From Marsupella aquatica (Eukaryota; Plantae; Marchantiophyta), in contig OZ316899.1 in assembly GCA_973895155.1 (NCBI GenBank), positions 1,263,573-1,327,572 of the forward strand: 64,000 nucleotides of DNA, in the 5' to 3' direction. Shown here piece by piece: positions 5,743 to 32,285 of this stretch (the first letter of the stretch is position 1; each line of letters starts with the position of its first letter). Both the position numbers and the translations under genes were made by a program. The notes beneath the pieces are model-generated. The model was not told the origin of the DNA. It saw only the letters and a program-made list of their open reading frames with translations, and made no database searches.

Positions 5743-5754
5743 TGGTATCAGAGC
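5743..5754 (+). promoter_or_regulatory. Primer-binding site complementary to the tRNA-iMet 3' end
   Basis: Exact TGGTATCAGAGC directly after the LTR. Confidence 0.9.
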
Positions 5755-5885
5755 GATTGGTGGCATAGACACCGGGCCGGGTTTGTGCTAAGTTGGAATC
5801 CAAAAATCTTAACAGATTTTTGTGGGGACTTAGTGCTTCAACATGCCCGGCGGGTCGACTGCGGGCAGATTTGGTTGTTGGGAAC

Positions 5886-7440: not shown

Positions 7441-7449
7441 TAAGTATCG

Positions 7450-7751
7450 CCTTGGGCCCAAGAGGAGCTCACACTCAAGCCGTCAGAACTCAAAGTCCAT
7501 CCGGAGGTCCGGATGGCCGTCCTTGAGCCCGGCCCATTTCCCCTTGACCCGAACAGCTATCTGCTAGTCCAAGTCCCTAGTGTGTGACCCTAGCTTGGCT
7601 CCTTGCCTCGCTAGTGCCACGTCTAATTGCCCACAAGTCTCCCCATGCTAAGTCCTCCGCGGATGGCCTATCTGAGCCTGGACCATAAGGGAGCTCGACG
7701 TCGGAGTCAACGACGCCGGAGCTAAGTGTTAAGGTAGTCGAGTTCCGCGAC
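7450..7751 (-). repeat. Inverted ~300-bp fragment of the LTR 5' end, replacing the protease and RT core
   Basis: The reverse complement matches 4277-4575 (gtcgcggaactcgactaccttaacacttagctc...ttgggcccaag). It is flanked by the gag knuckle on the left and RT thumb FLGFTGFYRRY on the right. Confidence 0.85.
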
Positions 7752-9372
7752 ACTTCTTAGGATTTACGGGGTTCTATCGGAGATACATGAAAGACTATGC
7801 AAGGATTGCAAGGCCCCTAAATGCGCTAACGTTGAAAAACAAAGTGTTTGTGTGGACACAGGATTGCAAGTTAGCATTCTTGGAACTTAAGCGGCTAATG
7901 ATAACGCCACCGGTTCTAAAGTTACCTGAGATGGGGAAGTCGTTCAAGATTTGGACAGACGCAAGTGATTATGCCATTGGCGCCTGTCTTCACCAGGACG
8001 GGCGTCTTGTGGCCTTCAAGTCATGTAAGTTGGAAAATCATTGGATCACACCGGAAAAGGAAATGTATGTTGTGATCTATGCGTTAAAGAAGTGGGAGAT
8101 TTACCTTAAGAACGGTCCCAAAGTGGTATTTCACACAGATAGCCCGTTGGTCGGGTACTTCAGTTCTAAGCCAAGACTGAACCCCAAGGAAATGTGCTGG
8201 CAGATGTTCTTGGCGGATTTTGATTTTGAAGTCCGCCACATTCCAGGGAAGACAAATATGGCAGCTGACGCGTTATCGCGTAAGGACCAACATCGTGTCA
8301 ATGGGATCACGATGCTTGAATCCAAGTGGCCAAAGGTTCTGGCCGCGGCGTATGGGGACGACAAGGTAGCTAAGGAATGGCAAAGCAATGGTTTCGGCCC
8401 GAGAGGTTGCCGGTCTAGTATTTGACAATGTCTTCCGACAATGGGGATTGCCGTTGCATATCCTGTCCGACCGCGATACCAAGTTCACGGGCCATTTTTG
8501 GAAGGCGTTGTTCTGGTTATCCGGAACAGACCTGACTAGGGGATCAACGTATCATCACAAGACAGATGGCCAAACGGAACAGGTTAATGGTATCATGGAG
8601 GACTACGTGCGTCACTTTGTGACGGCCAATCAAAAGGATTGGGCAAAGCATTTAACAATGGCCAAGTTTAGGTATAACTTGACCAAACATGCGGTGACGG
8701 GGTTTGCGCCGTTTGTGTTGGCCACAGGGAGGACGCCAAGGGCGCCCTCCTGGTTTATAAATCTAGAAGCTTGGCAGACGGAAAGCAAGGTTCTTTCTAC
8801 GGATGATTTTATTCGAGAGCGGCGCCTAGTTGTGGAAGCAGCTACCAAGGGTAAGACCTTGCCCAAAGTTGGTACAAGGAGCAAGGGGATAAATGTCGAC
8901 GCCAGGTAAGCTTTGAAATTGGGGAGAGCGTCTGGTTGCAGTTGAGACCTGAACAATACCACGGGAAAATAAGTAGGAAGCTGGCTCCCAGATATGCGGG
9001 GCCCTATCGCATTATACAATGGGCCCACAAGAATAATCCGGTTTTGGTGGTGTTGGAGACACCAAGGAAATGGGCGTGGGCAAAAGCTACCATGTTAACC
9101 GGCTCAAGAAGTTTGTCAAAGACGATGATCCCAACCGGGATTAGGTCTTGCGTCCGGACGCCATGCTGGTGGAGGACGCTGAGGAGTTTGAGGTGGAGGC
9201 AATTCTGGACCACCGTTGCAAACGCAAATTGGGAAGGCAAATTTTGGAGTACTTGGTGAAGTGGGCTGGCTATGACCAGGCCGAGAGTACTTGGGCACCG
9301 GAAGAAAATTTGGGTAATGCGTTAGAGATCCTTGGAAGCTATCGTAAGCGAAGCGGCCTACCGCCGTTGTGA
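7752..9372 (+). pseudogene. pol remnant: RT thumb, RNase H, integrase core, C-terminal chromodomain (frameshifted)
   Basis: RNase H: WTDASDYAIGACL...EKEMYVV...FHTD...FDFEVRHIPGKTNMAADALSR. Integrase: GLPLHILSDRDTKFTGHFW...HHKTDGQTEQVN. KLAPRYAGPYRII motif. Chromodomain: EFEVEAILDHR...EYLVKWAGYDQAESTWAPEENL (9148..9372). Confidence 0.9.
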
Positions 9373-9796
9373 ATTGGTACAGGCAGATGTAGCTACCTTT
9401 GTGAGTTGTATCCTAGTTTCACTCCTCTCGGTCTCTTAAGGATAAAGTCAGATTGCGTGGGTGCTAGAGATTGTTGGGCGGCCGATTTTCTTTTTGCGAG
9501 TGGAAGTTGATGGTGCCCGCCTTACATCTGTGGGCGGGCTAGTTCAAACCAAAGGGGAGTGCCCCAAGGGGAGGACAAAGGGTCTGACGAGTTTGGATTA
9601 ACTTACCCGTTTGGACTGGCATCCTACTTAGATAAGTGGGATAGGTTGGAATTTCCTAAGTTTGGAATACGCATACCAACCTGGTTTGCATCAGCCTTAT
9701 GGGCAAACCATTTGTTACCTCATAAAAATTTTAAGGCCCAAAGTGGTCTAGGCGTGTTGGAACGTTTACTGAGGTCACGCGGACGTGACCATTTTT

Positions 9797-9805
9797 AAGG
9801 GGGGG
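9797..9805 (+). promoter_or_regulatory. Polypurine tract
   Basis: AAGGGGGGG immediately followed by TGCAAGTCGCGGAAC, the LTR start. Confidence 0.75.
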
Positions 9806-10094
9806 TGCAAGTCGCGGAACTCGACTACCTTACACTTTGCTCCAACGTCGTTAGTTAGTCATGATGCTTAGGACAGGTGGACTCGTTGTTTCCAGGTTTG
9901 GTGTTTGGATGAGCCTCGTTGGTGGCAGCTGGCTGGGGCAAGAAAGGTGCTTTTGGAAACTACTTAAGGCTTGAGTTGCGGCTCATTGGGGTTGTTTGTT
10001 GTTCATTGTTGTTTGAGATGGTTCAAAGAGGTTTCAAAGTCTTAGAGATGATTTGGCTTGGATCTGGTGTTGGCTTTGAGATTTGAGTTTTAGG

Positions 10095-11505
10095 AGTCGT
10101 GGAACTCGACTACCTTAACACTTAGCTCTGGCATCGCTGACTCCGACGCCGAGCTCCCTTATGGTCCAGGCCCGGATAGGCCATCCAGGGAGGACTTAGC
10201 ATAGGGAGACTGGTGGGCAATGAGACATGGCACTAGCGAGGCAAGGAGCCAAGCTGGGGACACACACTAAGGACTTGGACTAGCTAATAGCTGGTCGGGT
10301 CAAGGGGAAATGGGCCGGGCTCAAGGATGGCCATCCGGACCTCCAGATGGACTTTGAGTTCTGAGGGCTTGTGTGTGAGCTCCTCTTGGGCCCAAGGCCA
10401 ATGGAGTTTGACGCCATGGACAACGGACGTTTGGGGCGCAAGTTATGGCCTGATCCGGGTTGGGCCTGTCGGGGGCCCCAAGCGGCGATGAGACCTGAGG
10501 GCCTAGGCATGAGCATTGGGTCGGCCCGATCACAATGGGCTAAGGCACTCCGCTTGCGGATGTCTAACAAGAGAGTTATGGGCGTTGTCAGTTGGTGGTG
10601 CGCCCATTATGCGCGATAGGATCCGGGTTGGGGGCCAAATGTTTAGGGACCAAAGCTGGTCCGGGGGTGGCAGGTCTCCAAAAGCATATATGAGGGGAGT
10701 GGTGTCTCCCTGGGGGCTAAGTGCGAGCCGAAGTCGTGAGCCGCGGCAGTCGCGACACTAAGGGAAACCGTCAAACGGAAACAGCGATATCTTCCCAACG
10801 GGAAATCCGTTGGAGGACTTCTTGGGTGCGTTGGAAAGCTCTTGAGCTCAGGTGGGTCTACGGGCACCTTGGGTTCTCGGGGTTTGCGGGTGTTGACGCG
10901 CCAAATCCTACCGAATAGCAGCCAAGCCGCGTTCAGCCTCCCAAGGGAGCTTGCGTTGGGGAGGCAAGGCCAAGTAGGTGTGGAGGTTGAGTCCCAAGAG
11001 GGTTTGGCCCCTAGACCATTAGATGAGGCAAATCAGGAGTTGGTTTCTAGAGTCGGGGCCATTCTGGTCCCGGCGGGTTGGGACAAGCTTGGGACAAGCT
11101 TTAGGACAAGCTACGCTATTTGGGCCATGAGCATGTCCTGGGGTCAGGGCGGCCAGTTGGTGATGGATAGGTACGAGGGGGAACGGCTTATGGCATTGGG
11201 AGGACCTATCACTGACCTATTTACCAACGTCTGTTGAGCTTGAGTTGGGATGCTAGACTTGGCAAGTTCTAGATCCTCAAAGGTTACTTACCGAGGTGCT
11301 TGGTTGCTTGTGTAGACAGTGAGGATTGTTGAGTAGCGGTCGTGTAGGTGAGCAAGTGCGGCTTCGTATGGGAGGGGCCGCTGGTGGTGCAAGAGGCACT
11401 TGGGTGCTTGCTTGAGGTATTCCATGGAGGCGTTCGGGCACCAAGGGCACTTAGGCGTGAGTGCTGGGATTGGTGAGGGCGCTGGGTGGCAAGGTCCACC
11501 ACTCG
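10095..11505 (+). repeat. 3' LTR of the chromovirus element (preceded by a 45-bp LTR stub at 9806-9850 and a foreign insert at 9851-10094)
   Basis: Collinear with 4277-5742, with scattered substitutions. It lacks the ~60-bp segment 5362-5421. Confidence 0.85.
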
Positions 11506-12140
11506 TGGCTTACGACTTTGGCTCACCCTTAGCCCCCAAGGAGACACCACTCCCCTCATATATGCTTTTGGAGACTTGTCACCCCCGGACCTACTTTGGT
11601 CCCCAAATTTGGCCCCCCACCTAGACCCTAACCTGCATGTCTAGGCACGCCACCAATAGGCTATGCCCATAACTTTATAGTTAGGTTTCCGCCGGTGGAG
11701 TGTCTTAGCCAGTTGTGATTGGGCCAATCCAGTGCTCATGCCTAGGCCCTCAGTACCCATCATCGCTTGGGGCCCCCAAGCGGCTAAACCTGGGTCGGCC
11801 GTAACTCATGCCCCAAGCGTCCGTTGTGCATGAAGTAAACTCCATTAGCCTTGGGCCCAAGAAGGGCTCTCACTCAAGCCCTCAAAACTCAAAGTCAGTC
11901 CGGGGTTCCAAACAGTCAACCCTAACTCCGGCCCTTTCCCATTACCCAACCAACCCTTAGCTAGTCTAAAGTCCTCTGAGTGTGTCACCAGTTTAGTGCC
12001 ACACCCCATTGCCCACAAGTCTCCCCATGCTAAGTCCTCCTCGGATGGCCGTTCCGGGCTTGGACCATAGGGGAGCTCGGCGTTGGATTCAGCGATGCTA
12101 GAGCTAAATGTTAAAGTAGTCAAGTTCCGCAACTCTGCTC
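11506..12140 (-). repeat. 5' part of an LTR of the same family, inverted
   Basis: The reverse complement matches 10095-10740 (gttgcggaacttgactactttaacatttagctc...gagccaaagtcgtaagcc). Confidence 0.8.
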
Positions 12141-13199
12141 TACTCGTAGCAAAGCGAGGCAAAAGGGGGAGAAAGGGGCATGTCTATGCCATTTTGAGGC
12201 TTTGAGGCAACTCGTGGTAGCTCGGGGCAAGTGGGCGTGATGCTTGCTTGCTAGGCGTGTGATCAGATTGCAAACTGTGAGTAGTTTTTGTGAGTAGTGT
12301 TTGACATAATTGGTCACCCATCTTTGCACTATTTTGCCTACAATACGCTTAATTGACAGTTTCTAGGTTCTGCTGGTGTACAAATTGCCTTAGAGGATTT
12401 GAAGAAATATTTGGACGTTTTCCCCCATATATGCATCATTTTAGGTTGTGTTAGAACCAGTTTTGGGATTTCTAGAGGATGGTGGTGGATAGCGTTTCCA
12501 TGAAGGTGACATTATCAAGTGCTGTGAGCACAATGAGCATGTCATAGACTACGAGCAGAGTAGCTACCATTGCGTTAGGATTGTGTGGTTTGTTCTATGG
12601 ATTCAAGGGGCGCCACATTTGGTGGATTGTGTTGCCCTGATTTCCATTTTGCAGTTTCATTTTTGGTTGGAGGGTTGTCGCTAGACTTCTTGTGATTGGA
12701 TCCCCTCCATCATTGTTTCTTGCTTGCGCGCCCATTGTTAGGGCTAACTCTGATTTCTGGAGTAGTTTCCTTCAGTGTGTTGCCGGTAGTGAGGTTAAAG
12801 TGATGACCAGTCAGACTATCTATGTATCTCTCATGGTGAGACTCGAGTGATGACCTGTAGACCCTGGAAGGCTTCTTGTGGTGATGACATGTTAGGTTGT
12901 CCATACCCATACCTAGTAGGGCTAGAGTAGCACAACAACATTGATGTTACTTGGTTGCCTACTCGTGGTGATTTAATTGGTGGTGGTGTTGTTTGTCATC
13001 ACGTAGCAGCTTAGTGGTCCGATTGGGGACCTTGGTGCAGACATTGGTGATTTTACACATAGTGGATTGAGGTATTGACTACCTTTTCCATTACCGTTGG
13101 TTGATGAGGAGGAGGAGGAGGGTGTTTTGGACACCAAGCTTCCATGTCATTGTCCAGTGTAGTAACTCCATTGATTTGGGACATGACAGGATGTATGGG

Positions 13200-13810: not shown

Positions 13811-14487
13811 ATAGGAGGCCACCTTGCCACTTCACTAGCTGAAACCAATCCGCAAAAGTAAAAAGTTGAGAAGCATTTTGAACGATGCACGTGTTTTCTT
13901 GGCCATTACCATTAGATCACCGATTTTGGGCTCCCATTCAAGAGCAAGTATTGTAAGGATGTAGAGATCTCTAAACTCTTCTTCCATGGAGACAAGTATA
14001 TCGGCTTTAGAGAAGCCATCCTTGGCCTCCCCAACAAGGTCTTTAGGATCCCGGGGACCATAGACTTGCAACGACATCATTTTGACATTATATTTGTGGA
14101 GGCGCAAACGCTTGCCCAGCCAAGACCTACGGCCTCAGTTTTGGCGTCCATTTCCATGGCACCTCCTCCAGCAACACCAACGGCTAACCTTCTCGGGCAA
14201 GGCCAGGCACAAACGCCACCCCGGGCACCTTCAAGCCGCTCTCCACTACCGGTTGCACCACCCGCTTGGCTGCAATCTATGGTTAATGCAGTCAACCTGG
14301 GCTCAGAGGATGAGGAGGCCCCTCCCCTTGTCCGCAATCCATCGGGTACCCATCAATGCATGGTGGGTACCGCACCACCGTCCTAGCAAGCCCAAACCCA
14401 GGAGGCAGCCCTGGTAGACAACACGGTCAGGGTTGCAACCCCAGCGCTAGTATTAACGGCGGTAGCAATATCATCTCCATGAGAGAG

Positions 14488-14585
14488 GGAGGGTATAGCG
14501 ACCGAGACAGGAAACAGTCAAACAGGAAATACTTTTCCTATTTGCCTTATGCTATTACCAGGAAAAAACAGTTTGTACCAGGGAA
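14488..14585 (+). repeat. Terminal-inverted-repeat-like sequence, left end of the Mutator-like element
   Basis: ggagggtatagcgaccgagacaggaaacagtcaaacaggaaa resembles the reverse complement of 35075-35136 (ggttataacgaccgtgacagg...ggaaacaggaaacaaacaggaaa) and also 39727-39800. Confidence 0.55.
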
Positions 14586-15183
14586 AGAACACACTATGAG
14601 GAGTTTAGAATTGTAAAATTTGGAGTTAGTCCATTGCGGTTAAGGAAGGATACCTTGTCATGAATCGCTGAACCACATAATAATTGAACCTCATATCCCA
14701 ACACAGACAAGGGGGTGCATACATAAAAATGTGAAGGAATGCGCACAAAAATGGTAGGTCCCACCACAATCGGCAACAAAATATATGAAAATAATACAAA
14801 ATGAACGCAACACAAAACTTTATGGTATTATATGGTCCAAAATAAAAGCGAACAATGTCTTGACTAGCGCCTGGCGCTAGCTTACCGGTATTTAAGGAAA
14901 TAAATAGTTGGCATTGACAACATCAAGCACAACACGATGATATTTGACGGTGTAGCCTAAACGACAAAATTATCAGCGCCTAGCGCTAACAAAAACATGA
15001 CGCGACATAAATAACACTATACCGTTGACATACGACAAAATCAATATAACCGTTTGGACCGATAGGACAACCTAGATCATCATGATTCATGCTATAAACC
15101 ATGAGCATTTTGCCTCTCCAATATGAGCCGAACCTCTCCAACAGTGAGAATTGGTTGGCTGGTCAATGTAGATTCCTTAATGT

Positions 15184-18100
15184 CTAGTTTGAAAATGGTA
15201 AGGAAAATCCAATACAAATGTTGCAAGGCATATATGGATGTTTTCGAGAATGTCGCTGGTAGAAATCCTCACAAGAGCAAGTGGGGAAAATGCAAATTTG
15301 AACAAAGTAACAATTCGGCGTCCGCATATTTTTGTGCGTTTGCACCTTAAACTGCTTTCCCCATGCATTCCCAATCGCGACATCCCACTCTCCCTGAATG
15401 GACATCGTCTCTTTTTTTGCAGACACAATTTTGTTCATGCGACCATGGGTAAGAGTTGACCGAGGAACCGTATTCCTCCCATTCCGGCTTCGGAGACAAA
15501 CATTGGGTTCGAGAAGATTCACATTTTCTGGAAAGATATTGACATTGATTCGAAGATCAAAATCTGATGGGGGTCTAGTCGTACGTTCATTTCCACGGAC
15601 TAGGGAGATTCCGTTCTCAAGAAGATATTGCATCTCGTCTTCCAAAACATTTGTCCCTTTTAAAATGGGAAGAACATCAGGGAACGGGGGCAGGTTCAAT
15701 ACACCTCGACGCGGTCGGCTTCTGTAACATGTATTGTTTGGGAAAAAGCAAATCATTTCGGTTATGGGTTCCCCCTGAAAATGCATTGTCCTTTGACAAC
15801 AATGCCGATAACACCATGTGGTGAGGGAAATCCAACTTTTTTCACACGATTGCAACACTCGTCTCTTTCAGAATTACGGGCAAGCAATCCGTTGCACTGA
15901 GGACTAGAGCCAAATTTTGAAGTTTGACGTAATTGCCATGCAGTTGGAGCGACCTCGGTCTCACGGACAAGACATTCTTGTAACGGTTGCTGAAGCACAG
16001 AGGGAGCAGTCTGGGGAAGCCTTGTTGAACGCGTTCGGTCTTGAGTAGGAGGGGTATTGAAATCGACATCTTCTCCACCGCCCGAAATGTCACTTCCAGA
16101 CAGATTAACTACAGGAATAACTTGAGGCGTGGGTCTAGGGATAGCATCAAACGTCATGCGATTAAGATTCTTCCTTTTCATCGATCTAGTATTGGGCGAG
16201 GTGACAAGGATTTTATCATGCCTATGGGAGTCTTGTGGCGAGATATTCCCAGATGCATGTCCTTTCCTCTTCAAAGATTTGGTGACAACGTCTCCATTGA
16301 GAGGTGCTCGTCTCTCCAAGTCAAACTCGACAGCATTGGACAGTAGCATATTCATTGCATCTTCAAACAACTTGGGGGAGCCTGCCTGGTCCGCTGATCG
16401 GAAAGCGAGTTCCCAAATCGTGGGACCTTTTCCTCTATGCAACCCTTTCTGATACGCAGTGTAAGCAGCAACCTGAGAAATAGCTTGAGTTTGGTCCATT
16501 TCACATGCCTCAAAGAGCCCAACCTTTTTCTTCATTACCCATGCTTTCATACCTGCGTGCACGGACTCTGATCCTATACAATTAGGAATCTTAGCCCCTT
16601 CTTTGACACTCTTGTTCTGCAATTACATAGAATAAATTCCCTGTTACGCAACCAAAAAAACACTAGCGTTGGGCGCTAGAGAAGTGGAGTCGGTACCTAG
16701 AAGTAAAAATTGGCAATGTAGATTAAGGGACAACTTATTGTGTCCTATTTGTGTCATCTGACAGTTTGTGTAAATAATAGCGTCAGGCGCTAGTATTAAA
16801 GGATGCTATGGTATTGTAATATTTGAAGTTTACACTATCGATACAATCATTCTGTAATGAGAATATAGCACAGAAATACTTAAAGAGTGGAAAGGAAAGT
16901 AAAACAACTTACCAAACGAATAAAATTTCCCCATTGCCTCCACCTGACGACCCACCATGAAATCCAACTCTGAAGCATCCAGAGCTTCCCGAGGACACAG
17001 TTACCCGACTGCCACCACAAATCAATCTCCCTTGAAAGTCTGTAAGCCTCTACAAACGTGGGGGCATTTCGCATCTTATCCCAAAGCACGCGATGCTCTG
17101 CTTGACTCTCTTCAATCACTCCTTCAACTGAATGGCGATGGAAGGCTTGGTAGAAATGGAATGCGTCAGTTCGCTCACGCTCTGGGTTTGGATGCCCTCC
17201 AAAAAAGACGTTTCGGACTGCCAGCCATCCAGCTTGAGCATTGTCCGCCATGAATCCATGAATGATCGGATTTTCTAATCCATTATCCTTGGACACCTCA
17301 ATCATTAGTCTCCAAGCCTTCTCAAACAACTTTGTATCCTCTACTTTTAGTTCGTAGGTAAATAAGGTACACAGAGCGTGATAGTTGTCATCGTAAATAT
17401 GCGCGCTAAAAGTAACCCAGTCTTTTGTGAGTCGTTTCATCACATCAAAACTTACCCAAGCACCTTCGAGACTTCCACTAGGTTGCATTTGTCTCAAAAG
17501 ATTGACGCCTGATCCATGGCCGATCAAAGTCATCTTGAATATGTGAGGACGGTCATCTTGAGATCCTTGACCTGGTAGGAGGTACCTTTGGAGGAAAGGC
17601 ATGTTGATATTTCTTTGATACCGAACAAGAAAATCTATTTCACCTTGACCTTTCTGGTCCTGTCTAACACTACAAAAAAGGGACGCAAACTTTTGGGGTG
17701 TGGAAACTACCATGAGCGACTCAAATATCTTTGTTTCTTCAATATCTTCAATATCTTCCATACTTTCACACAAGGACTTTACAAAGGACCCTGTCGCAAC
17801 ATTTTTTACACCAACAGGGGTGAAAATTGGATTTCCTTCCAATTTCTTTTTGATAACCTCCTCAACAATCTTCTCTGCACTTTGAGAAAACACCTTTCTT
17901 GAAGGATGGTTGTGTATCCCCATATGAATCCCCAAGCGTGACATATGAGTAACGGTTTCTGAGTCAACTAGAACCTGAGGGTACATGTAAAATAAATGTG
18001 CTGGACAAGATTGGACACAAAATGGAACTTGATCACAAAAGTGGCAAACTACTCCACCTTCGTCAATGAGTGAACCAACATGATGTTGCCCGCCCAGTTT

Positions 18101-18914
18101 GGGGGTTCCAGCCCAGGCCTTTTGGTTCCTCCTTTTCTTCCGCCAAAAATAGTCGCAAGTATTATTCCTACCTCAATGGAACCAGTGCACGTTACTTTAC
18201 CAAATTCCCAATATTTCTTGGGATGAACATTAGCTGATGTAGGAAATATTCTGGTCCAGATCTAGCAATCCTTCAACCGGTCCATGTCGCGTAGACGTGA
18301 CCCCTTTGAAAGAGCTCCCGTCACAGGAGGCAACTCAAATACAATATTTCCATTGTATTTCTTTGGCAAGACTTGTTCATGGCGAAAGTCCCCAGCCGCG
18401 ATGAACCTTGAGATTTCACTGGAACCAGTTGACTTGAGAATGGTATCCATTGCACTTCTTCGATACACAATGGAATTCTTGGGAACAACAGTTGTAACCT
18501 CCTGTTTAACAGGGGTAACCTCCTATTTAACAACTGTGTGAGGGGGTTTAGCACTAGACTCAGGCAAACCAGAAGGTCCATCATCGTCGCTATCTAAAAG
18601 CAAGACAACATCAACAAAGGGTTTGGATGAAGATGGGAGATCGGATGCTACTGGTTTTTGAATGACAATAGAATACCAAATTCTTGCATTCAGGTGCCAA
18701 AAACGAATCCCGTCATCAACATCAAAAGAAGCAATGAAATTAGACGCTTCATCTCCATTTCCCTCCTCCAAATGTCCTCAATGTTGTTCAAATCCAAACC
18801 AAAGCGCCCACAGAGATAATTCTCACTAACTTGCTTGTAAACGTCATTGGCCGACAATGGAATGGATACAAGGTCACCAATAGACGGACGCGTCAGAATG
18901 ATTGACCTTGACAT
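15184..18914 (-). pseudogene. MULE-type DDE transposase with an N-terminal Cys/His (GCM/WRKY-like) Zn domain and a C-terminal SWIM finger; spliced and disrupted
   Basis: ORF 16880..17986: WVSFDVMKR...FSAHIYD...LCTLFTYELKVED...HGFMADNAQAGWLAVRNVF...ERERTDAFHF, matching MULE-domain spacing (D..D..CxxH-like). Upstream: VCHFCDQVPFCVQSC...HMGIHNHP. ORF 15184..15858 ends VQICIFPTCSCEDFY...YMPC (SWIM). Introns at about 16623-16905. Confidence 0.75.
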
Positions 18915-19846
18915 TGCAAGATCAGCCAGCCCAATTCACGATAATGAATGACGTCTTCAAACGTACACAATGGTATTCATAGTGAATAATCCGTTTGTCA
19001 GAGCCGTTAGAATACGACAGAATCACTACCGGGCGAAAGCACATCTGAGACAATAAATGTTTTTTGTCGTTATGTCAACGACATTTACACTAATGACCCT
19101 AAGATGTCCCTTTCCAAACAACATCATTATGTATATAAAATTACTGTAATTGAGTAGCGCCTGGCGCTACTCAAACATCCTCACTCCAACATGGACTGAA
19201 AATGTTTAGGGCCAGGCGCTACTCAAACCCACACCCTAAATTGTGGTATAAAACTACAATATTTTACCTGGGGTTTCAGGATAAATCCTAAATGTTTGTA
19301 TATATTTTACAAATATTATCAAAATATTGCCAAAATGGGGAGATTTAATATTAGTGTTGGGCGCTAATCTGAAATGGTAATCATGACATCCATTTAAGGA
19401 CAAATATTCAAAAATATGTATTCATTTTGTTTTTTATTTTCTACTTCAAAGTCAAATCTGTCTTGACTTAGGAGAAATTAGGGTTTAAATAGTGAGAGTT
19501 TTTGGTAGCGCCAGGCGCTACTATTGACCAATATGAGATTTCACCTATGAATATAGATTAAAATTTCCAAATTATTTATGTAATGGTCATATTCAACGGT
19601 AACGTTAGGTCGCGTAACGTTGAAGATATGCCAACGGTATTCCAACAACTAATCCAAAGTTGACAAGTGGTGCTCAGGAGAATGTTTTACATAGATATCA
19701 ATGTAGCGAGGGGATAGTTTAGAGATGATACTCTCTCCACCTTCCTTGTTCGTTGTATTTAGGTTCCGTTTCAGAGGTTATTTGAGCAAGAATTCTCTAG
19801 AAGAAGTACGGTATGAATGAGGTACTCATCACGATCGTGAAGCACT

Positions 19847-22800
19847 TTGTGTATGCAAAACATGGACCCTCTCCCCACCACCTCACATGGGTATACTGCT
19901 AACGGGCAGAGAGAGCAAATCCATTCCCAGACGTCGGAGTGCTCATTTTCTGGATCTATTTACAGTCATCGAGTGACACGGTCTACAGCATCCCAAGCTC
20001 CCAAAACAATCGCGGTTGTCACATTTCCAAAGAGCAGGAGAGCAAAGATGGACGATCTCGACACATACGCTGTGGAAGATCAAGGAGAAATGTCGCTGAC
20101 AATGTCCGATGTTATCTTGAAGCACGTTGTGTTGTTTGGCAAGGATTTTTGAGGGCACGACAAAGACTCACCAAGGATTCCAATGTGCCGCTTGGTTCAC
20201 ATGGAAGTTGTCCGCACCTTACAGAAGGGAAGTCCTTCAATTGAAAAGTTGAAGGACTCTTTTCGTAGCATAGGATATAACTCAAAAATTGGAATGTTGT
20301 TTTATGTCCAGCCGGCAGATTCGAATGGGAATGTCCAGACGTGTACTCCGGAAATTTGAACGACCTAGGACCTGATGTGGGTGGCCAAGAATGAGAAGTT
20401 TGAAGCTGAATGTGCGGCCGATCCAAACTTCAGGGTGTTACAGGATAAGATGTTTTACGTTTTTGACGGTAACCATCGACTTTACGCATGGTCGATGGTT
20501 ACGAAAGAAAATCTCGATGATATCAAGTATCACCCGCAAGTGCAATGTACTATTTTCAAGGGTGAAAAGGGATCTTTGATTGAGATTGAGGCGGCTATGC
20601 ATACTGTGAACCAGTAAGTCTCTCTTTGAATTTCAATGTCTCTTGTTCATAGTATGCTTTTTTACTAGCGCCTGGCGCTATTGACTGACAAATTCTTCTA
20701 TAGGCTTGGACAGGCCATGGTGGAACCTTCCTGGATACTTGATGCCGACCAAATTAAGAGGATTTTGTCCAACAATCTAGAATACTATAAGTCAATCATC
20801 GATGCAGAAGACTCGAAAAGGATCGTGGTATACCAAGAAAATGCCTCAAGAAGCACTTATGTATATCTTATGCGAGAATAAGATTAAATCCTATTCTCGT
20901 CAATTCAAGATGGACCTGGAGTCGGCTACCGCTCAAGGAAATCCTTGGTCTCAAGAAGAGACGTCCAAATGACATGCGGTCATGATGAAAGAAGCAACGA
21001 AGGATTGGGCGATCAAGGTCTCAAAGATCACTCCCTTGTTGAGTCCAGAGTTTGAAGACTTCATGACAACTTGAGCTGAGATGTACCCGATGACAGAGGT
21101 GAACAAACGTGAGAAGAAACCAGATGTGGTTGTCTGTACCATGGACCGTGCCAGGTTATTTACAGCAGTCTCCGCCCTCAACCCCAAATTGAGGAGCACT
21201 TTGTTAGTAGCGCATTGCACGCCAGAGCTCAGGAAGGAGTTCTTTCATCCGCAAAGCGTTAGCGATGACCTTGTGAAGCAGTGGTGCCACACATGGCAAA
21301 CTTGGAATAGCGTGGAGGGAATTGCCATTGGTATGCTGCAGACTGCCCTCCAGCAGATCAGTGAAATAATTCATTCCAACCGATTGGAGGAATGGAAGTG
21401 TGAGTCTTATGACTCACTCGTTGAAATAGTGTGCAATGATTTCAAAAAATTTGGGGATGCAGTGAAAGGTAAAGTTTTCAATACGATGTGGATGTCCAAG
21501 TACCCGGACAAGGAAGACTACACACTCAAGAATCAAAAGCGAGCGAAACGATATGTCTATTATTTCTTCATGCACATGGAGATTGTGAAGCCTGACTATT
21601 GCTTTCCAAAATTGGGTCATTTGCGTAGACGGAGACGTTTTGGCCGAACTGTATTTGATGTATCCCGCTGAGGGAATCCTTCCGCCGAGGAAATTGTCAG
21701 AGTGGGAGAGAATTCATTGCCCCTGGTATCTTGACACCAACAGATGGGATTCTCCTTTTGATGACACTGAGAAGGACGCTTTCCATAAGCTGTCCAAATC
21801 CCAAGTTCCGAGACAATTTGTCTCCAACATGAAGCAAGGAATTGAGGGAGACATCAACGTGTCGACAACTGAGTTGCAAAAAAAATGCAAAACCGTTGTG
21901 GTTCATGTTGATCAAAGCCAAAAACCAAGAGCCAAAGCCAAGGCAGATGCCCCCGTGGCAAGTGCTAGTGCCAAGTCTAGGAAAAAATGTAAGCTACACC
22001 TCCTTCTTTCGACTTCCTTCTTTGGTAGCGCCTGGTGCTATTATGTGTCATGAGTTTAATATGTTTTATTTCCCAAAATTAATGTTGGTGTTTGGCCAGC
22101 GCCTGGAGCTAACACTCTTTATGTGCTTGACACTATTTTTGGTAGGTGGGAAAAAATCTGATGCCACCACAGATGACACAAAAGTAGATGCAACACCAGA
22201 AGTCTCTGAGGCCAACACTGGTGCCAATCCAGACCCCATCACCCCCGTTGAGAAGGGGAAGGTTATAGTTCCTGTGGATGCTACAAGCACGACGGAGAAG
22301 AAGAAAAGGACCATCGATGCCTTGGAATCGTCACGAGATAATGCTTATGGGGCCGATATCCAACGGGATGTGGGGAATTTCAAGACCAAACTTGGAAGAC
22401 ACTATATGGTCGAATCAAGCTTGGCAGAATTCATTGATAGTGCATTTAGTAAGGAAGAGAAGCCAGATTGGGTTGCAGACGCTGAGAAGTGGGGTAAGGA
22501 TTTGATCAAGTCGGGGTGTAGAGATAAAGGAGTCATAAGAGGTGGGAAGGAATGATCATTTGGGGTGAATGTGGGTTTCATCTATCTCCCAACTGGTTTG
22601 AAACCCACAATTGTTGACCGTCGGGTCCCAAAATGGAATATAACAGATCACACAGCAACCGCATCGTTTTTTCGGGCGATGGATCCTTTCCTTTCGGATG
22701 ATGGCATGCTCGCCATCTTATACTTGGATGACCACGATCAGATTTCCCAGGTCATTTCAGCATGTCAGCAATCCAAGAAGTTCATGTGCATCAATATGCA

Positions 22801-23538
22801 CAATGTTTTCATGTCTGTCCCAATGTACAGATCCAAGACAGATGTCCAGGTAAATGTTCTCTCTGCGTATAGCTATACTAGCGCCCGACGCTAATATTTA
22901 TTTATTAGGAGGTCTTCTCGCATGACTAAGAGATTTTTAAAATCTAGTTGGTTTGTCTACTTTTGCAGGTCTTCACTCTTAGACTAGATATATTTTGTCA
23001 AGTTTCTTTTAAGGGAAAGGTCCCAAAGGATCCAAGGTTCAAGCCGTTGTCTAGCGCTGAAGATCCTTCAATCTCAAACCTTATTGGGCTACAATCTTTG
23101 AAGGAAGATCATTGTCCTGAACTCCATTTTACTGGGAATGCCCGACCACCGGTTGGTTTTATGCAAACTGTCCTTGAACTCTTTACGATACCTAAGGATA
23201 TTGTAATTGATTGGACCGTCGGCTCAGGTAGTACATTCATTGTTGGGGATTACTCGGACCGTTTTGTCATCCGGTTAGAAAATCGTCGGGAGTTTGTTGA
23301 GACCGCTTCGAGGATTTTTCTGGACCTCATTTCTCCCAAACCTTTGGAGACACAACCTCCCCCTCCTCAAATAACTAGACGAAAAAAGAAAGATAGACTT
23401 AGATCTGTCCTCAACTTTGATTTGGACGAAGATGATGGGACTCCAAAAGATGATAGTTCTGAGGATGTCAATGACGGTGGGAAAGAGGAAACCCGACATG
23501 AAGGGTCAACGGAGGATAGCGAAGAGTCTTCCGAGTAA
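19847..23538 (+). pseudogene. Spliced cargo gene: ParB/Srx-like N-terminal domain plus a C-terminal beta-class N4C/N6A DNA-methyltransferase-like domain
   Basis: One frame 19847-20613 (3 in-frame stops) reads IPMCRLVHMEVVRTL...LKDSFRSIGY...FYVFDGNHRLYAW. GT-AG introns at about 20614-20702, 21989-22143 and 22850-22968. Exon 22565-22849 has VGFIYLPTGL and FFRAMDPFLSDDGMLAIL. The last exon has RPPVGFMQTVLELFTIPKDIVIDWTVGSGSTFIVGDYSDRFVIRLE (motif X-I-II pattern), then an acidic tail. Confidence 0.7.
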
Positions 23539-25313
23539 TTTTTGTCTCTTGTAAGCTCCTTTATCCTTTCAATTGTTGGCTAACCTTCAATTCCACCGGT
23601 TCTATCGATTAAGTACTTACTTCCTCTTTCTCTTCCGTTTCTCTTTTGAGCAGGTCAGAATGGAACCAAAGAAAATGGTTTCAACTCCGGAGGAAAGTGG
23701 CTTGAAATGTAATCATCACTCCCGAGAAGCCGTTTGTGTTGCCATCATACGCTAAGAACGTCGCGAGGAAGGCAGAGAAATTTAGGACGCTCTGCTGGGA
23801 AACAAAAGGACTTAGGCTTCTTAGGGGAGTAGACAGAAAGTTCATGAGGAACCCCTACATAGATGATGTTTCTAGAAGCAAGTATATTGATGACGAGGCA
23901 GAGTTGACCGACAGATCTCATAGCTCCTAGAATGATAGCTTAGAATCTGACACTTAAGGGTAGCAATTTTCTCCTCTATCAACTATACCTCTCAATTGTA
24001 CGCGTATGCCCTTGGTTTTTGTTAGCGCCTGGCGCTATTGAATTTATTAAATCGGAATTAGTTTGAGGAAGATTGCCACTTCCATTCAGTGGTTAATGGG
24101 TTTGTCAAACCTGGTAATGGGGTCTTTCATAACATCCTTTGTGTGGGTTCCTCTCCTTGTTTAACTAGCGCCCGACGCTCCCCAAAATGGTACCCCCTAA
24201 AAAATAGGTTGGAAGTTTCCGTTTGAAATTTTTTTGTTTCCGTCCAATGGTCATTTGGCTTTCAGTCGGAGACTGGTACCGAGAAGAGGACCAATAATGA
24301 GAAATCCAAGTGCCTTATAAACATACTATTGTGTCTGGGATATCAAAACATTATCAGTTCCGCACATTGCTTGCTTCTTTCAAAGTCCATTGCACTCGTT
24401 TTTCTCCTTCTCGATTCCATGGAAGGCCATTTTGGAAGCTCCAATGTAGGGCCACATCCGGATCTTAATAACTCTGGTATTGTTAGAGATATGGGAATGG
24501 AGATTGGCGCACATAGGGTTATTGAAGGAGATCACGTTCTTCCCGTTTTGACTCACTTTACTTCATTCGAGACAAGGACTGAATCTGTTGAGACAAACCA
24601 CAGACTTTGTCAATCGCCTCCATCTTGCGCCGGATGAAGGTATCAGTCCCGGGGAGAGGAACATCCCTTGGCAGCGTGATGTTCCGTCGCCCCTGTTTAT
24701 GGAGAGGTTTTCTGTTCACCTGTCCGAACCCATGCAGGTGCCATTGCCTCTCCATCGTCAACTTTAGGAGATGTATGGACGTGTCGACTTTCAAGAACAA
24801 ATCTCCCAGAAGCGGGTTTTCGGAGACCAGTGTATCGACGGCCCACGAGAGCATATGTCAACTTCTGATTAGATGGTTTCCGCCAAGATCCAGATCGTCA
24901 GGATGCTGGGATTGACAATGACTGTCACTCTTCAAGCTAGGACATGGTACAAGGAAGCACCCACCGGGAGTATTAGCGTCTGGCGCTAGTTACAATTGTA
25001 TTGGAAACTTTAGTGTTTCTATGTAGCAATATTTGTACATCGAGGATAATATCTTTCACTTAAATAAAAAAGCTCAAGTTTGTTTTCTTTCAATTTCCCG
25101 TTTGAAATTCTGACTAAGATACATTGGTTAAGTCCTGCTTCTGTGCTTTGATATTGAACCTAGACTGTTAGAAATGTTTGGTTTCTATTTGGCTCTCAGC
25201 CTGAACATCACTCCTATGTTCTCGTGATTTGCTCCACAAAGCATGTGAAGCGCCCGACTCTAGTATTCGGCATGTTTGGGCGATTAATGTTTCATTATTT
25301 TGGGTTTGAACGT

Positions 25314-26032
25314 TGTCATGCCAAAAGATTTTGGCTCAGGAATGGCTTTTATAGGGGATGATAGGCGAGGCCTCCCGGTTGGGTTGCGTGCATGCTGACT
25401 CGGAGGGGCTGCTTGGTTGGATGGATTGAGGTTTGGTGATTGGGTGACTGGTCGTCACCAGGTTTGGTGTTTGGGTGAGTCTCAAGGCTTGGAGTTTGGA
25501 TGAGCCTCGCTGATGGCAGCTGGCTCAGGCTGGATGGTTGGGTTTCCGATGCTACTTAAGACTTGAGCCTCGGCTCATTGAGGTTGGCGGTTGTCTATGG
25601 AGATCTGTTGAGTTACGTTCTGTGAGTTCCGCTTCGTTCTGCAGAACTCGACTATTGTGCGGCAGTTTTGGAGTTTTGAACGAGTGTTGGATCCAGGTGT
25701 GGAGTTTTTGATCCAGGCCGGGGTTTTTCTCAAATTTGGAGTCTCATTGATCCAGGCGGGGATTTCTCAAGTTTGGAGTTTTTTGATCCAGGCGGGGATT
25801 TTTCTCGAGTTTGGAGTCTCGTTGATCCAGGCGGGGATTTCTCAAGTTTGGAGTCTTGTCAATCCAGGCGAGGATTTCTCAAGTTTGGAGCCTCGTTGGT
25901 CCAGGCCCAAGTTCCGTGTGAGCTATTTTAGACTAGTGGAGTAGCTAGTCGAGTTTTGGTTTTGTGAGCTAAGGAGGATAGTTTTTCCGTCAGATTTTGG
26001 GTAGTTAGTCACTTGAGGAGTTATACTCGACA
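25314..26032 (+). repeat. Putative 5' LTR of the second gypsy family
   Basis: TGTC...GACA termini. Segment 25455-25590 is related to the insert at 9890-10000. No partner LTR is in the window, so the ends are tentative. Confidence 0.45.
25690..25910 (+). repeat. Tandem array of ~36-39 bp units (GATCCAGGCGGGGATTTCTCAAGTTTGGAGT...)
   Basis: Unit starts at 25710, 25749, 25785, 25824, 25861 and 25898, plus a partial unit at 25690. Confidence 0.85.
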
Positions 26033-26202
26033 AGTTAGAGGTAGCGGCCCGCCGTAGGGCCAGCCACAAGACTCTTGCGGGCAAGCTTACTTGAGGGCAC
26101 CTATTGTAACCTTTGTGAGAAAAGTAAAAAAATATAAAGGAGTGAGAGTTCGCTCCAAAAAGTGCTTGTCGCCTGTCCCAATCGCAGCCATAAACGCGTA
26201 GT

Positions 26203-27213
26203 TTGCCCGAGGAGCCCCTAACTTTAAGTCCTCACGACATTGGCGACCATACTGGGGATTCCTTGGGGCGATTGGATGAGATGGGTGACTATGACAAAGT
26301 CAATCAGATATCAAACATTGTCATGTCGATGATGAGAACCATAAGGAAGGAAGAGCTTGAGTCAAAAAGGGCAAACAGGGGGGGTATTTACAAACGACAG
26401 GAAACAGCAAACAGTAACAGAAACCATAAACTAGTAACAGGAAAATGAGTGGTAATTTTTTTTGAATTTTTTTTGAAATTTTTTTTGGAGCTCCTAAGGG
26501 AGTTCAAGAGAAGGGTGTCTTAGTTACCGAAGCGGGATGTGGGAATCATCGAGTTGCAGCGCTCGACACTCTTCTTGAGGGCAGCCGATGAGGACCTTCG
26601 AGAGGAGCTTGAGAACGCGATGGAGCTGCTGGAACCTTTGAGAGTTACCTTGTCTAACGACTGGAACCAAGTTGAGAAAGCGGTGTCAAAAGTGAGCAAT
26701 CGACACCGGCGGTGAGAGCTAGACAAGGAGGCTACCACTCTCGATCTAAGGCCGCCGGAGCCGATATTGAGGAAAGGGAAGCGAGAACCAGCGAAGGATG
26801 AGATCAAACCATCGGTGGATGATCTCGCGGAAATGATGCAGAACCTGAAGATCTTGGCGGCACATGCGGTCAAGAATCCAAAACCAAGGGTTGCGAGTGC
26901 TCCCAAGAGGAAGCAAGAGATGCAGAGTTGGCCATGCATGTGGTGCGACAGCAAAGAGCATGACAAACGGGAGTGCCTGGACCTGAGGGAAGCTGCGGAT
27001 AAAGGGCTGATCAAGTTCGTCGGTGAAGTTGATCAGAAAAAGATATCGTTTGCCGATACTGAAGAGCCGATGGTGAAGGTTTGGAGCAAAGATGGGAAAG
27101 AGGTGGTTCAATTTCCGGCTGTTTTACCTGGAAACGAGAGGAAAAGGAAAGGGTTGAGGACTGAGAGTGCCGACTCTGGTCCAGGTCCAGAAAACGACTT
27201 GGCACTTTGCTGA
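26203..27213 (+). pseudogene. gag of the second gypsy family, interrupted by a DNA-transposon end
   Basis: Knuckle CMWCDSKEHDKREC in ORF 26767..27213. The reading frame is broken at 26378-26490. Confidence 0.7.
26378..26490 (+). repeat. Orphan TIR fragment, near-identical to the reverse complement of 39930-40030
   Basis: GGGGGGGTATTTACAAACGACAGGAAACAGCAAACAGTAACAG...GAGTGGTAATTTTTTTTGAA is present in both. Confidence 0.85.
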
Positions 27214-28972: not shown

Positions 28973-31900
28973 TTGCTTGAAGAAGCAAGGCAGCTGATAC
29001 CTACGTATGAAGACGTTGAGCCGGAGAGCGCAGCCAGAGAACGAGCGGAGCTTGCGCGATTGTGGGGAATTCACAAGACGACATTTGTAGATACGGAGGA
29101 GGTGTTGGAAAAGTTCTCGTGGACACCCACCAGTGCAGAGCTTGACGAATTGCTGATTCGAGAGAATAAGGTCGTGGGGATTAGGGAGGCAATCAAGAAC
29201 GCAGGGTAGCCACTTTGGGAGTTGAAGGGTCACACTACGAAGTGGGCGAAGGAAGCTATTCTCGGGGAGTATTCAGGCGCTGAAGAGATGAAGCGCAAGG
29301 GAGGTTCGGCATCCGCCACTCCAGCAAAGCGAACTAGGTTGGAGAGACCAATCAAGATGGAATCCGGGCCAGTTAGAGATCGGGCTGTAGAGGATAAAGC
29401 CATGACAAGGTGGGCGAACAGGTTACCTGCCAATTTACAATTACAGTTCGCAAGAGATGAGGATGAGGTCTTCAGTGCCATTCAGGATAATAAATATGCA
29501 GGATATATGAATGACACTGGGTTGGAGGGCTTTGTCAGGTTGTCCTGGAGGATGGTAGACATACAGGATGAGGATCTGTTGGACTTTGTGGGATGCTGGG
29601 AGGCTTCTTCCAACATGACGCTGCTATATGGAAAGGTGTTTGAACTAACACCTGCGCTTATCAAAGCCGTCTTCGCTTTACCAACAGGAAGGAAAACTAA
29701 GGTGGAGCAGAGGAAGACGTTGTCGGATGACCAGTTCAGGTTATTTCCAGGGCCTTCCACTAAGAATGGGTTTTTCAGGAATCAATGTACCAACCCGCAT
29801 ATAGGGAAGCTGATTGATTTCCTGAGAGTCACGTTGCATTGTACCTTGCCGAGAGCAGAAATCGGCAAAGCCCAGGTATTTTTGGTGGAGAATATCGATG
29901 CAAGCCGAGACTACAACGGCTATCTCTTAATGCAGTTGAAGAAGGCATTAAATGAAGAGAAGCAGAGCATTGGGGAGGGAGCGGTATCCAGACTAGGGTA
30001 CCATCTGCAATTACTTTGCCGATATACAAGAAGCCAGTCTTTTGCACTAGTGTTGCCTATACAGAAGCGGATGCCGATCACTGCACCACTTGAGGAGGTG
30101 GAGGAGGACGAGGAGCCTCTAAGCAAACAACGTCATGGGAGGAGGTTGGCAACACTGGCAACACGAGAACGGGAGCATTCCCCTATCAAGGAGCCAGAGG
30201 TAGTCACATATGATGTAGTGAGAAATCCCGCCGGCCTACTCGTAATAATCCATATGTAGGCATCCAATTAGTCGAGAGGAAGATGACTGCCAAAGAGAGA
30301 AAGAAATATGACAAGCGAATGGATTCAGAGACAGATGAGGAGGTAAGCCGAAGCCAGGAGAGGCCGGTATTAAGAGCTTCTAACAGAGCCCAAGTGGAGG
30401 GACCTGTGGAGGAAGGTCAACCAGCAGCAGACCAACAATATTCGGAGGAAGAGATCGAGGGCTTTGGAGGAGAGGCCGGCATGCTAGGTAGTCAGGTTAA
30501 TGTCGATGATTACGACGATGACTATGTCGATCACGGGGAGAGGCCGGTACCAGGAGTTAGAACGATGGGAAGGTTTTGTAGAAGACTTCCCGCGGTCTTC
30601 TATGGCAAGCCGGAGGACCAGAAAACACCAGAATCTCCTCCACCAGATGTGACGCCATTGGAATTTGACAAGATGAAGGTAGGTGAAGCCGGGCTACATG
30701 AGAGGATTAAGGAGTGGGGGGCCCGGAATGCAGAACAGGAATGCCAGCTACCAGGAGGAGAGTGGCCGGAAGAAATAAGACGGCTTAGTGAGAGGCAGGC
30801 CAAACCTCTCATTGACTTTGATCAATTATGGGCAGAGGCTTGGGAGAGACGACCTCGATGGCAGATGCCAGTATCACCTGGGAGGTCAAACTATGCAAGA
30901 AATCGGGCTAAGGAGTATGGAGACATGTGTGGACTCTTAGCCTTAGAAATCTTCGGTAACAAGTTGGAATCCGGGCCATTTCTTAGAAAAGAAGTGGCTG
31001 ATCAAACGAGACTGGAGGAGGCAATGACGTTGGAGCAGTTAAAGAAAGAGGAGGTAATTGCTCGGCTTTGCTCCATGGAAGCCAAAGTTGCTAAGACGAA
31101 GTCTGGACAACCAACTCAGCAGGATCTCTTGGCCAAGCAGCAGGAATTAGAATTGGCAAACAACCAATTGGAAAACTACCAATTGGATAACCAGCAGATC
31201 AAGGAAAAATTGACGAAGGTAGAGCTGGAGTTAGCCAATTCAAAAGCAGAAGTACAGGGTCTAAATCGCCAAGTTGAGAGGCTCAAAAAGACGGCTAAGG
31301 ATCAGGCCACCCAGAGCGAGAAGGCCTTGGCAGAAGCCCAAAGGAAGTATGACAAGTTACTCGACCGGTTGGATACCATGCGTGAGAAGCATGATGACGC
31401 CATGTGCAATGCGGCCAATGCTCACCTAAAACGGGTTCAACAGATACGCAAGGAGCTAACCAGGACAAAGCAGGCATGGATGGACGAGGTCACAAAGCTG
31501 GAAGGCATCAACGACTCCTTGAAAGCAGCCGTAGATAAGCAAGAGTTGGAGATCGTGCAGATCTTGAATGAGGAGCTGAAGATGGCCAGGTCCGAGATAC
31601 AACGGCTTAACGATGAAGTTGAAGATGTATCTCAAGAATTGGAGGAGGCCAGGGATAAGATGCTCGGGTTGCAGAAGCGTGCCGACAATAAAACGGAGAG
31701 AAATTGAAGAAGTATGTCAAAGCGGGATATGGGTCACCAACTGAAAGGCTTCCCGTCAGTAGTATGGTAGGCGGAAATAAAGTGAAGCCGAGTCCGAAGC
31801 CGAGCTCACTATTGTCAAGCGTGACTGGGGGCAAAGCCATGCAGTTGGTGGTAGATTTGGCAAAGACGTTCATGGGGCCAGGCGATAATAAAGTTAAGCC

Positions 31901-32285
31901 CCTTAAAGCCACTCTGGAGGAAGTTGAGAGCATGGCCGCTCACATTTGTGGTACTGTGGCCCTGAAGGCAGTTGTGGTAGAGGTAAGTACTGCGGATCAA
32001 CTTGGAGCTGCGGTAACAGGTTTAGACGATGGTACTGTTTCTATGGACGCCCAGAACGTGAAGCCGTGGGTTATCGAGACCGAGCGCATCGGGGAGCGGG
32101 CTTGGATTGAGGAAGTTAAGGCAAAAGCTCTCCAAGTTGTTTCCCAGGAGGATGCCGATGCAGCAGCCGATGCCGGGGCCGACAAACCAGAACCCAAAGT
32201 CGAGGAAGCCGAAGGGGTCAAGCCGGAGCCGATGACAAGAGAAGGTGCAGAGTCGGAAGATTCAGACTTACCCCCGACCATTTGA
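28973..32285 (+). pseudogene. Extra post-pol ORF of the second gypsy family (~1100 codons in pieces; C-terminal coiled coil)
   Basis: ORFs 28973..29209, 29222..30259, 30283..31707 and 31704..32285. Homologous to 1-2783. Confidence 0.8.

Follow-up and report, generated by a model that had tools for sequence, protein, structure and literature searches.

Family-specific palindromes in the non-coding DNA of a liverwort MULE-like transposon: candidate recognition sites for an element-encoded protein

Why should one short palindrome recur through the introns, the shared promoter region and the gene flanks of a transposon while keeping out of its exons? The question is raised by a 64-kb stretch of DNA from the liverwort Marsupella aquatica (contig OZ316899.1 of assembly GCA_973895155.1, positions 1,263,573 to 1,327,572; termed the window, and numbered here from its first base), which carries a decayed copy of a very high-copy transposon resembling Mutator-like elements (MULEs). 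A transposase gene on the minus strand and an accessory (cargo) gene on the plus strand stand head to head in this element, and copies of the 15-bp palindrome TAGCGCCWGGCGCTA lie between, within and beside them. Sequence comparison suggests that the palindromes may be cis-recognition sites, through which a DNA-binding protein encoded by the transposon, specific for their sequence and probably a dimer, would keep the element active or marked; this reading is given a probability of roughly one half here.

The abundance of the palindrome was determined against dinucleotide-preserving shuffles of the sequence. Five copies of TAGCGCCWGGCGCTA were free of mismatches (at 14865, 19155, 19506, 20666 and 24023; 0 expected), and matches with up to three mismatches numbered 15 in the whole window against 0.36 expected. 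When only the 12 arm positions were scored (TAGCGC-N3-GCGCTA), all 16 sites that an earlier reading of this DNA (the original prediction) had placed within 14865-25262 were recovered, five of them perfect as it had said, together with a decayed copy at 39876 in a miniature inverted-repeat transposable element (MITE); the other arm-scored matches in the 64 kb carried three mismatches and were chance-like. The sites at 24166 and 25248, with two and three mismatches, are weak members of the set, while the predicted 25-bp palindrome around the copy at 19155 was verified. The individual sites are:

14865-14879, perfect palindrome, 3′ of the transposase gene.
14974-14988, palindrome with one arm mismatch, the flanks of which mirror those of the 24023 site.
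16664-16678, variant palindrome in the transposase intron, reading TAGCGCCCAACGCTA on the sense strand.
16778-16792, palindrome with one mismatch (TAGCGT half-site), transposase intron.
19150-19174, 25-bp palindrome containing the perfect 15-mer at 19155, divergent intergenic region.
19207-19221, palindrome with one mismatch, divergent intergenic region.
19352-19366, variant palindrome with two arm mismatches, one of them private to the window copy, divergent intergenic region.
19506-19520, perfect palindrome, divergent intergenic region, at a deletion-derivative breakpoint.
20666-20680, perfect palindrome, cargo intron 1.
22026-22040, palindrome with one mismatch (CpG to TpG), cargo intron 2.
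22097-22111, palindrome with two mismatches, cargo intron 2; position 22107 is C in the family contigs, restoring GGCGC.
22879-22893, variant palindrome TAGCGCCCGACGCTA, cargo intron 3.
24023-24037, perfect palindrome, 3′ of the cargo gene, at a deletion-derivative breakpoint.
24166-24180, variant palindrome with two arm mismatches.
24974-24988, palindrome with one mismatch.
25248-25262, weak variant copy with three arm mismatches.

The position of the sites relative to the genes was then considered. The features concerned are listed below, where numbers beginning with L denote loci of related elements:

14487-14530, plus strand, left terminal inverted repeat (TIR) with the repeated motif GACAGGAAACAG, which differs from the palindrome.
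15110-18914, minus strand, decayed MULE-like transposase gene, with exons at ~16880-18914 and 15110-16622 placed by tblastn with the L003 and L001 exons.
16623-16879, minus strand, transposase intron with palindromes 16664 and 16778, orthologous to introns in L003, L005, L086, L088 and L001.
18915-19861, intergenic region between the divergent genes, containing palindromes 19155, 19207, 19352 and 19506.
19862-23538, plus strand, accessory gene, a pseudogene, with an N-terminal ParB_N-like motif and a C-terminal N6_N4 methylase-like motif-I region.
20606-20704, plus strand, cargo intron 1, 99 nt, GT-AG, with palindrome 20666; its orthologues are L087 606-704 and Riccia L004 ~5895-6345.
21989-22145, plus strand, cargo intron 2, 157 nt, with palindromes 22026 and 22097.
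22850-22968, plus strand, cargo intron 3, 119 nt, with variant palindrome 22879.
39730-40030, MITE, ~300 bp, bounded by related TIRs and containing a single decayed palindrome (39876-39890).

All 16 sites were located in non-coding DNA, which itself makes up ~37% of the element (p ~1e-7), and the avoidance of coding sequence that had been predicted was therefore evident. Two sites are in the transposase intron, four are between the divergent genes, one, two and one are in cargo introns 1, 2 and 3, respectively, and the others are 3′ of genes. The introns were predicted from GT-AG boundaries, restoration of the frame and orthology, and cutting out the three GT-AG cargo introns restored a single reading frame. 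The remaining 53 kb of the window were otherwise devoid of the motif. A motif common to the host at large was considered and, within these 64 kb, rejected, the sole copy beyond the element being the one in the related MITE, as the original prediction had also indicated. It could be supposed that the palindromes are terminal sites for the transposase, but the TIRs carry GACAGGAAACAG instead, which excludes this. Subterminal transposase repeats were likewise rejected, given that GACAGGAAACAG is found only in TIRs (elsewhere in the window at 26396 and at both ends of the 39730-40030 MITE, all TIR-like places) and that the palindromes are spread over 10.4 kb.

Comparison of the sites with one another showed that about half contain one TAGCGT half-site and that an asymmetric form, TAGCGCCCRACGCTA, is common to several. 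Wherever it could be assigned, in the window and at L088, the asymmetric variant followed the sense orientation of the nearest gene. The central CC-W-GG was conserved among sites of the window family, and it was the arm sequence itself, beyond mere pairing, that was conserved within a lineage. No target-site duplications flanked the sites, and the similarity of flanks between some sites was above the null. Analysis of CpG dinucleotides was uninformative (observed/expected ~0.7 inside and outside the element, with 27 of 32 palindrome CpGs retained), and a search of Rfam returned nothing meaningful matching the palindromes.

To extend these observations to other elements, the DNA around relatives of both proteins was retrieved and the palindromes were compared locus by locus. 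Each lineage examined proved to have a palindrome of its own (0.00 expected by chance in each case), always in non-coding DNA and including the orthologous introns of both genes. Identities are to the window proteins:

L087, accessory gene 70% identical: TAGGGCCAGGCGCTT, a single copy within the 99-nt orthologue of intron 1, at a distance of 62 nt from the start of the intron, compared with 60 nt in the window.
L088, transposase 66%: TAGCGCCCGAGGCTG, one copy, 20 nt into the orthologous transposase intron.
L005, transposase 56%: TTGCTAGCGCC-GGCGCTAGCAA, centre one base shorter, three copies in the orthologous transposase intron.
L085, transposase 48%: ATGCTAGCGCCGGTGCTAGCAT, one copy.
L001 and L086, transposase ~51%: TTGCCAGCG-N3-CGCTGGCAA, at the start of the orthologous intron in L086 and twice downstream in L001.
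L003, transposase 45-58%: CTAACGG-N2-CCGTTAG within GAAGG...CCTTC, 21 copies at one mismatch or fewer.
L004 (Riccia), transposase ~35%: AGCTARCG-N5-CGYTAGCT, 14 copies.
L002 (Calypogeia), transposase 38%: TCTCGGAGAG-N-CTCTCCGAGA, unrelated, 12 copies.
L028, L035/L037, L054 and L060/L062, transposase 25-33%: other long palindromes, in arrays of several copies.

Retention of a site was seen in cargo intron 1 at L087. The exons around it are ~70% identical to those of the window and the intron outside the palindrome is no more similar than shuffled sequence, yet the motif is kept at the same position. Across the nearer lineages the inner half-sites form a graded series (TAGCGCC, GCTAGCGCC, GCTAGCGT, GCCAGCG, GCTAACGG, then unrelated sequences) that loosens as the transposases diverge, and the cores change as well, to CCGG in L005 and L085, an AT-rich centre in Riccia and GGRYCC in L003. 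Eleven of the L003 copies are in an upstream 64/96-bp tandem array, three are in the orthologous intron and the others lie between downstream genes. In Riccia, seven copies lie between the divergent ParB-like and transposase genes, two are in the orthologue of cargo intron 1 and the others are past the first transposase exon. The orthologous transposase intron of L001, at 55 nt, contains no palindrome.

A dense, family-specific motif of conserved sequence that keeps to non-coding DNA, is retained in orthologous introns and is replaced in concert between lineages forms the pattern expected when cis sites co-evolve with a trans factor encoded by the element. One interpretation of these data is that an element-encoded protein would recognize its own family along the whole length of the element, via sites in its introns, in the promoter region that the two genes share and beside the genes, and that the bound protein would keep the transcription units of the element active or specially marked, by analogy with the VANC proteins considered below. 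The palindromy suggests a dimer, and recognition of duplex DNA is favoured over that of a hairpin because the arm sequence is fixed within a lineage and the would-be loop, CC-W-GG, is conserved. The original prediction had also invoked sites for a factor of the element's own; family specificity, non-coding placement, retention in an orthologous intron and turnover between lineages all speak for that part of it, and its emphasis on CCWGG as a methylation target fared less well, as described below.

The accessory protein is tentatively favoured as the candidate binder, since the repeat of the TIRs is not the palindrome and since a ParB_N-like gene often accompanies this transposase clade, in at least 10 loci and usually in the divergent arrangement. 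Cargo exon 1 encodes the sequence VFDGNHRLYAW, and a W/F-DGNHRL-AW motif was conserved in 11 loci, the window and ten others. The nearest Atlas clusters of the accessory protein were DUF6551/ParB_N at 0.91-0.92, which serves as a lead only, and the label 'ParB-like' is accordingly used here as a lead drawn from sequence. On the C-terminal exon, the Pfam model N6_N4_Mtase (PF01555) gave a borderline match (26.9 bits against a cut-off of 26.7) covering model positions 162-219 of 221, the motif-I end only, and no DPPY-type (D/S/N)PP(Y/F) motif was visible in the translated upstream exon of this decayed copy. The central cargo piece had no detectable homologues, and no ParA-type ATPase domain was found in the open reading frames of 14.4-25.3 kb. 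Note that the ParB-like copies at L004, L035, L037, L048 and L028 have a stop at the same conserved W/F position just before DGNH, as would be expected if a TGG codon had decayed by G-to-A change in copies under silencing.

The transposase, acting through a GCM-like zinc domain, is a less probable binder. Among 1.8 billion representative proteins it has 239 relatives, the named ones from the liverworts Calypogeia fissa and Riccia sorocarpa and the others from metagenome or raw-read assemblies. Its Atlas language-model features adjoin MULE clusters at 0.92-0.93 and its core has conserved D...D aspartates, while the Pfam MULE models matched neither the transposase nor its relatives. A model of the N-terminal Cys/His-rich domain, of moderate confidence, gave as its only non-noise match in the PDB a DNA-bound GCM domain (probability 0.80, template-modelling score ~0.4). 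GCM-type zinc fingers are of a kind known in MULE transposases. The transposase as binder is favoured by this putative DNA-binding domain and by L003, where 21 sites are present and no ParB-like gene lies within its 7.25 kb; the L003 contig ends inside the upstream array. A RING-finger (zf-C3HC4_3) cargo gene is present at L003 5669-6190, and the L003 palindrome is also found in its flanks.

Several observations weigh against recognition by an element-encoded protein, or against a ParB-like one in particular. A ParB fold found no Pfam match up to E=10 (DUF1015, at E=0.014, being the only hit), the PDB sequence search was empty and the AlphaFold model was unusable, with a predicted local distance difference test value of 36. 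Pfam detected no domain at all, helix-turn-helix or other DNA-binding domains included, in the other pieces of the accessory gene, a decayed copy that makes for a weak search. Across 80 metagenome loci there was no clean correlation between palindrome arrays and presence of the ParB-like gene, the copies being distant and decayed. The 'parS-like' description given by the original prediction is therefore no more than a likeness in form: a ParB_N-like motif exists and a 15-bp palindrome lies near its gene, while Pfam, the PDB and AlphaFold did not confirm it and neither a helix-turn-helix nor ParA was found. No GT-AG joints at the predicted introns were seen in the four public runs that hold the family; these runs consequently behave as genomic DNA and give no RNA evidence. 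The spread of single sites into separate introns of 99-157 nt is likewise not readily accounted for. In addition, the gap between the arms differs among lineages, in the range of 3 to 5 nt, and certain copies at L001 and L005 are extended symmetrically, each in its own way, which is suggestive of selection for structure or of quasi-palindrome correction by template switching. The L005 palindrome at 1172-1231, in the transposase intron, folds with a 19-bp stem at 1181-1222 and by eye is near-perfect over ~60 nt, or ~29 bp per arm; such arms exceed the need of a protein dimer and hint at structure or a mutational origin. If transcribed, the full palindrome would be long enough for a Dicer-sized duplex.

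The alternative that survives best, and which is nevertheless judged unlikely, is that the palindromes are a non-functional by-product, namely quasi-palindromes spread or perfected by template switching, gene conversion, local duplication or tiny selfish insertions, and surviving where they are harmless. The above-null similarity of some flanks is consistent with this, symmetric arm extension is a product of quasi-palindrome correction, arrays arise through tandem duplication, and confinement to non-coding DNA is expected of any insertion. Such a process would not, however, readily explain why one particular palindrome is maintained in a dense array by every lineage examined, across 25-70% divergence of the proteins, with its type turning over in concert, or why a site is held at the same position in an orthologous intron that is otherwise randomized. 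The lack of target-site duplications and the absence of the motif from the other 53 kb, except in the related MITE, also count against it.

It is rather improbable that the palindromes act as structure-forming elements, namely cruciforms in DNA or hairpins in the RNA of introns and untranslated regions, with effects on such processes as splicing, the maturation of transcripts or recombination, and with the core sequence being secondary. The long-armed palindromes do fold better than shuffled sequence, the copy-specific symmetric flank extensions of L001 and L005 bring arms up to ~19-29 bp, the asymmetric variant, in the window and in L088, reads in sense with respect to the gene closest to it, and the breakpoints of deletion derivatives are at palindromes. 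The window unit, however, is only 15 bp with a 6-bp stem of -4 to -5 kcal/mol, and most copies barely beat shuffled sequence. Conservation of the would-be loop, an arm sequence fixed within the lineage with no compensatory variation, the location of some sites in probably untranscribed spacer arrays and the lack of an Rfam match all argue against this reading.

Methylation targets are a poorer explanation again. Here, the CCWGG or GCGC core would be modified by the N6_N4 methylase-like domain in the manner of EcoRII or MvaI, so that the element is marked, and both the borderline Pfam match and the use by liverworts of N4-cytosine methylases of prokaryotic origin (bioRxiv 10.1101/2021.02.12.428880) lend it some plausibility. 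Against this, only the motif-I end was detected, with no (D/S/N)PP(Y/F) seen in the upstream exon, and L003 maintains its 21 sites with no methylase gene within its 7.25 kb. CCWGG is moreover missing from the nearest lineages, and because these have CCGG (L005 and L085) or an AT-rich centre (Riccia), CCWGG, which the original prediction had stressed, is regarded as incidental. Its further suggestion, that a palindromic insertion created each surrounding intron, would account for the presence of at least one palindrome in every intron of both genes and is already contradicted, since the transposase intron occupies the same position in the window, L003, L005, L086, L088 and L001 with different palindromes or, in L001, none, cargo intron 1 is common to Riccia and L087, the majority of sites are outside introns, and the introns have ordinary GT-AG ends with no target-site duplications. 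Two points raised by that prediction are in this way settled, namely that the introns do not owe their origin to palindromes and that the CCWGG core is an incidental feature.

By analogy, the closest documented system is the VANC/VANDAL21 anti-silencing of Arabidopsis (VANDAL21/VANDAL6). By way of a dense short motif, VANC21 occupies the non-coding parts of VANDAL21, namely its introns and its intergenic and terminal regions, and related families have different motifs that evolve through tandem repeats (PMC5735166). The bryophyte elements are alike in pairing a putatively Mutator-like host with an accessory gene (the MULE assignment here being from Atlas features, with the Pfam MULE models unmatched), in a family-specific short motif dense in their own introns, intergenic and terminal non-coding DNA, and in related families with different motifs, with array growth by tandem repeats in L003 and Riccia. 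They differ in that no open reading frame or exon piece gave a Pfam match to VANC (DUF1985), in that the motifs are palindromes of 15-30 bp rather than the 9-mer YAGTATTAY of VANC21, and in having bryophyte hosts and a ParB_N/methylase-like accessory gene; a likeness extending to hypomethylation would be by analogy only.

ParB-parS, together with VirB and KorB, offers a second comparison, in which a protein with a ParB_N-type motif (DGxHR) is found beside palindromic sites of 15-16 bp. VirB is reported to be ParB-like and to counteract silencing (PMC10653881). The present system departs from these in that Pfam, PDB and fold tests were unsupportive, no helix-turn-helix, ParA or GERRxRA-type box was identified, it is a eukaryotic transposon along which the sites are scattered, and the L003 sites occur without a ParB-like gene in view. 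It could be, as a long shot, that this bryophyte Mutator-like clade has a eukaryotic counterpart of ParB/parS, whereby the accessory protein would load on the palindromes of the element, spread along or mark it, and avert silencing or tag self, with co-evolution of protein and palindrome insulating co-resident families from one another.

The AtMu1c transposase at TIRs and the subterminal motifs of En/Spm TnpA are further instances of element-specific cis motifs for an element-encoded protein, and Mutator transposase alone activates cognate copies through its binding sites (bioRxiv 10.64898/2026.08.24.746577). The window transposase is likewise modelled with a GCM/WRKY-like zinc domain. The AtMu1c and TnpA sites are clustered at the ends, whereas the palindromes are found throughout the element, every intron included, and the TIRs carry another repeat.

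The searchable literature yielded no prior account of transposons with ParB-like genes or arrays of palindromes in bryophytes. If the palindromes are bound by an element-encoded protein, they would constitute a second independent code for transposon self-recognition in non-coding DNA, after VANDAL/VANC, and one present in early-diverging land plants, where the accessory protein is of another kind and apparently of prokaryotic ancestry. The graded palindrome series would offer a ready-made system for the study of protein/site co-evolution and of how co-resident transposon families stay distinct, and is a possible source of short orthogonal protein/site pairs for chromatin targeting in plants.

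The state of the window copy was judged against its family. Near-identical proteins or contigs of the window family were absent from the collections searched. The stretch is covered by contigs of the family that come from two organisms and four public runs; most pieces are 90-99% alike and the summed depths are in the thousands, from which it follows that the family is very abundant. The window copy is dead, with stops and frameshifts in both genes, and is enriched in private changes to T and A at places where the family reads C and G (in the best 40 of 614 variant places). Three private changes fall in palindromes (19355, 19358 and 22107), and at each of these, among the variant places listed, all family contigs have the base that would return the site to the palindrome or to its variant form; at 19355 and 19358 the window has T and the contigs C, yielding TAGCGTCGGGCGCTA. 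Within 18800-24300, joints of deletion derivatives were present in family contigs of two organisms, linking 19520 to 24017 and, with a 27-nt filler, 19527 to 22875, with breakpoints at palindromes.

A matching right TIR or end of the element was searched for and not found. Two TIR-like arms of 67 nt, at 26378-26444 and 39964-40030, belong to the same TIR family as that at 14487 and are 94% complementary at a distance of 13.5 kb. The DNA between them is G-skewed and has 1.7-kb tandem duplications (31341-34860) and no palindrome array, and the flanking 9-mers of the arms are unmatched, such that they may not represent one insertion. GC-rich, G-skewed repeats surround the element (window 1-13000 and 25300-26300), among them repeat copies at 4270-5720 and 10090-11480, inverted copies at 7450-7750 and a 75-nt tandem repeat at 25705-25891; these are probably LTR-like (long terminal repeat) or satellite-like host repeat DNA. 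Finally, a half-palindrome followed by CTAGTATT is present in both outer flanks (14443-14460 and 25254-25270) and resembles the sequence beside the 16786 site; the element may thus lie inside what is left of an older member of the same family.

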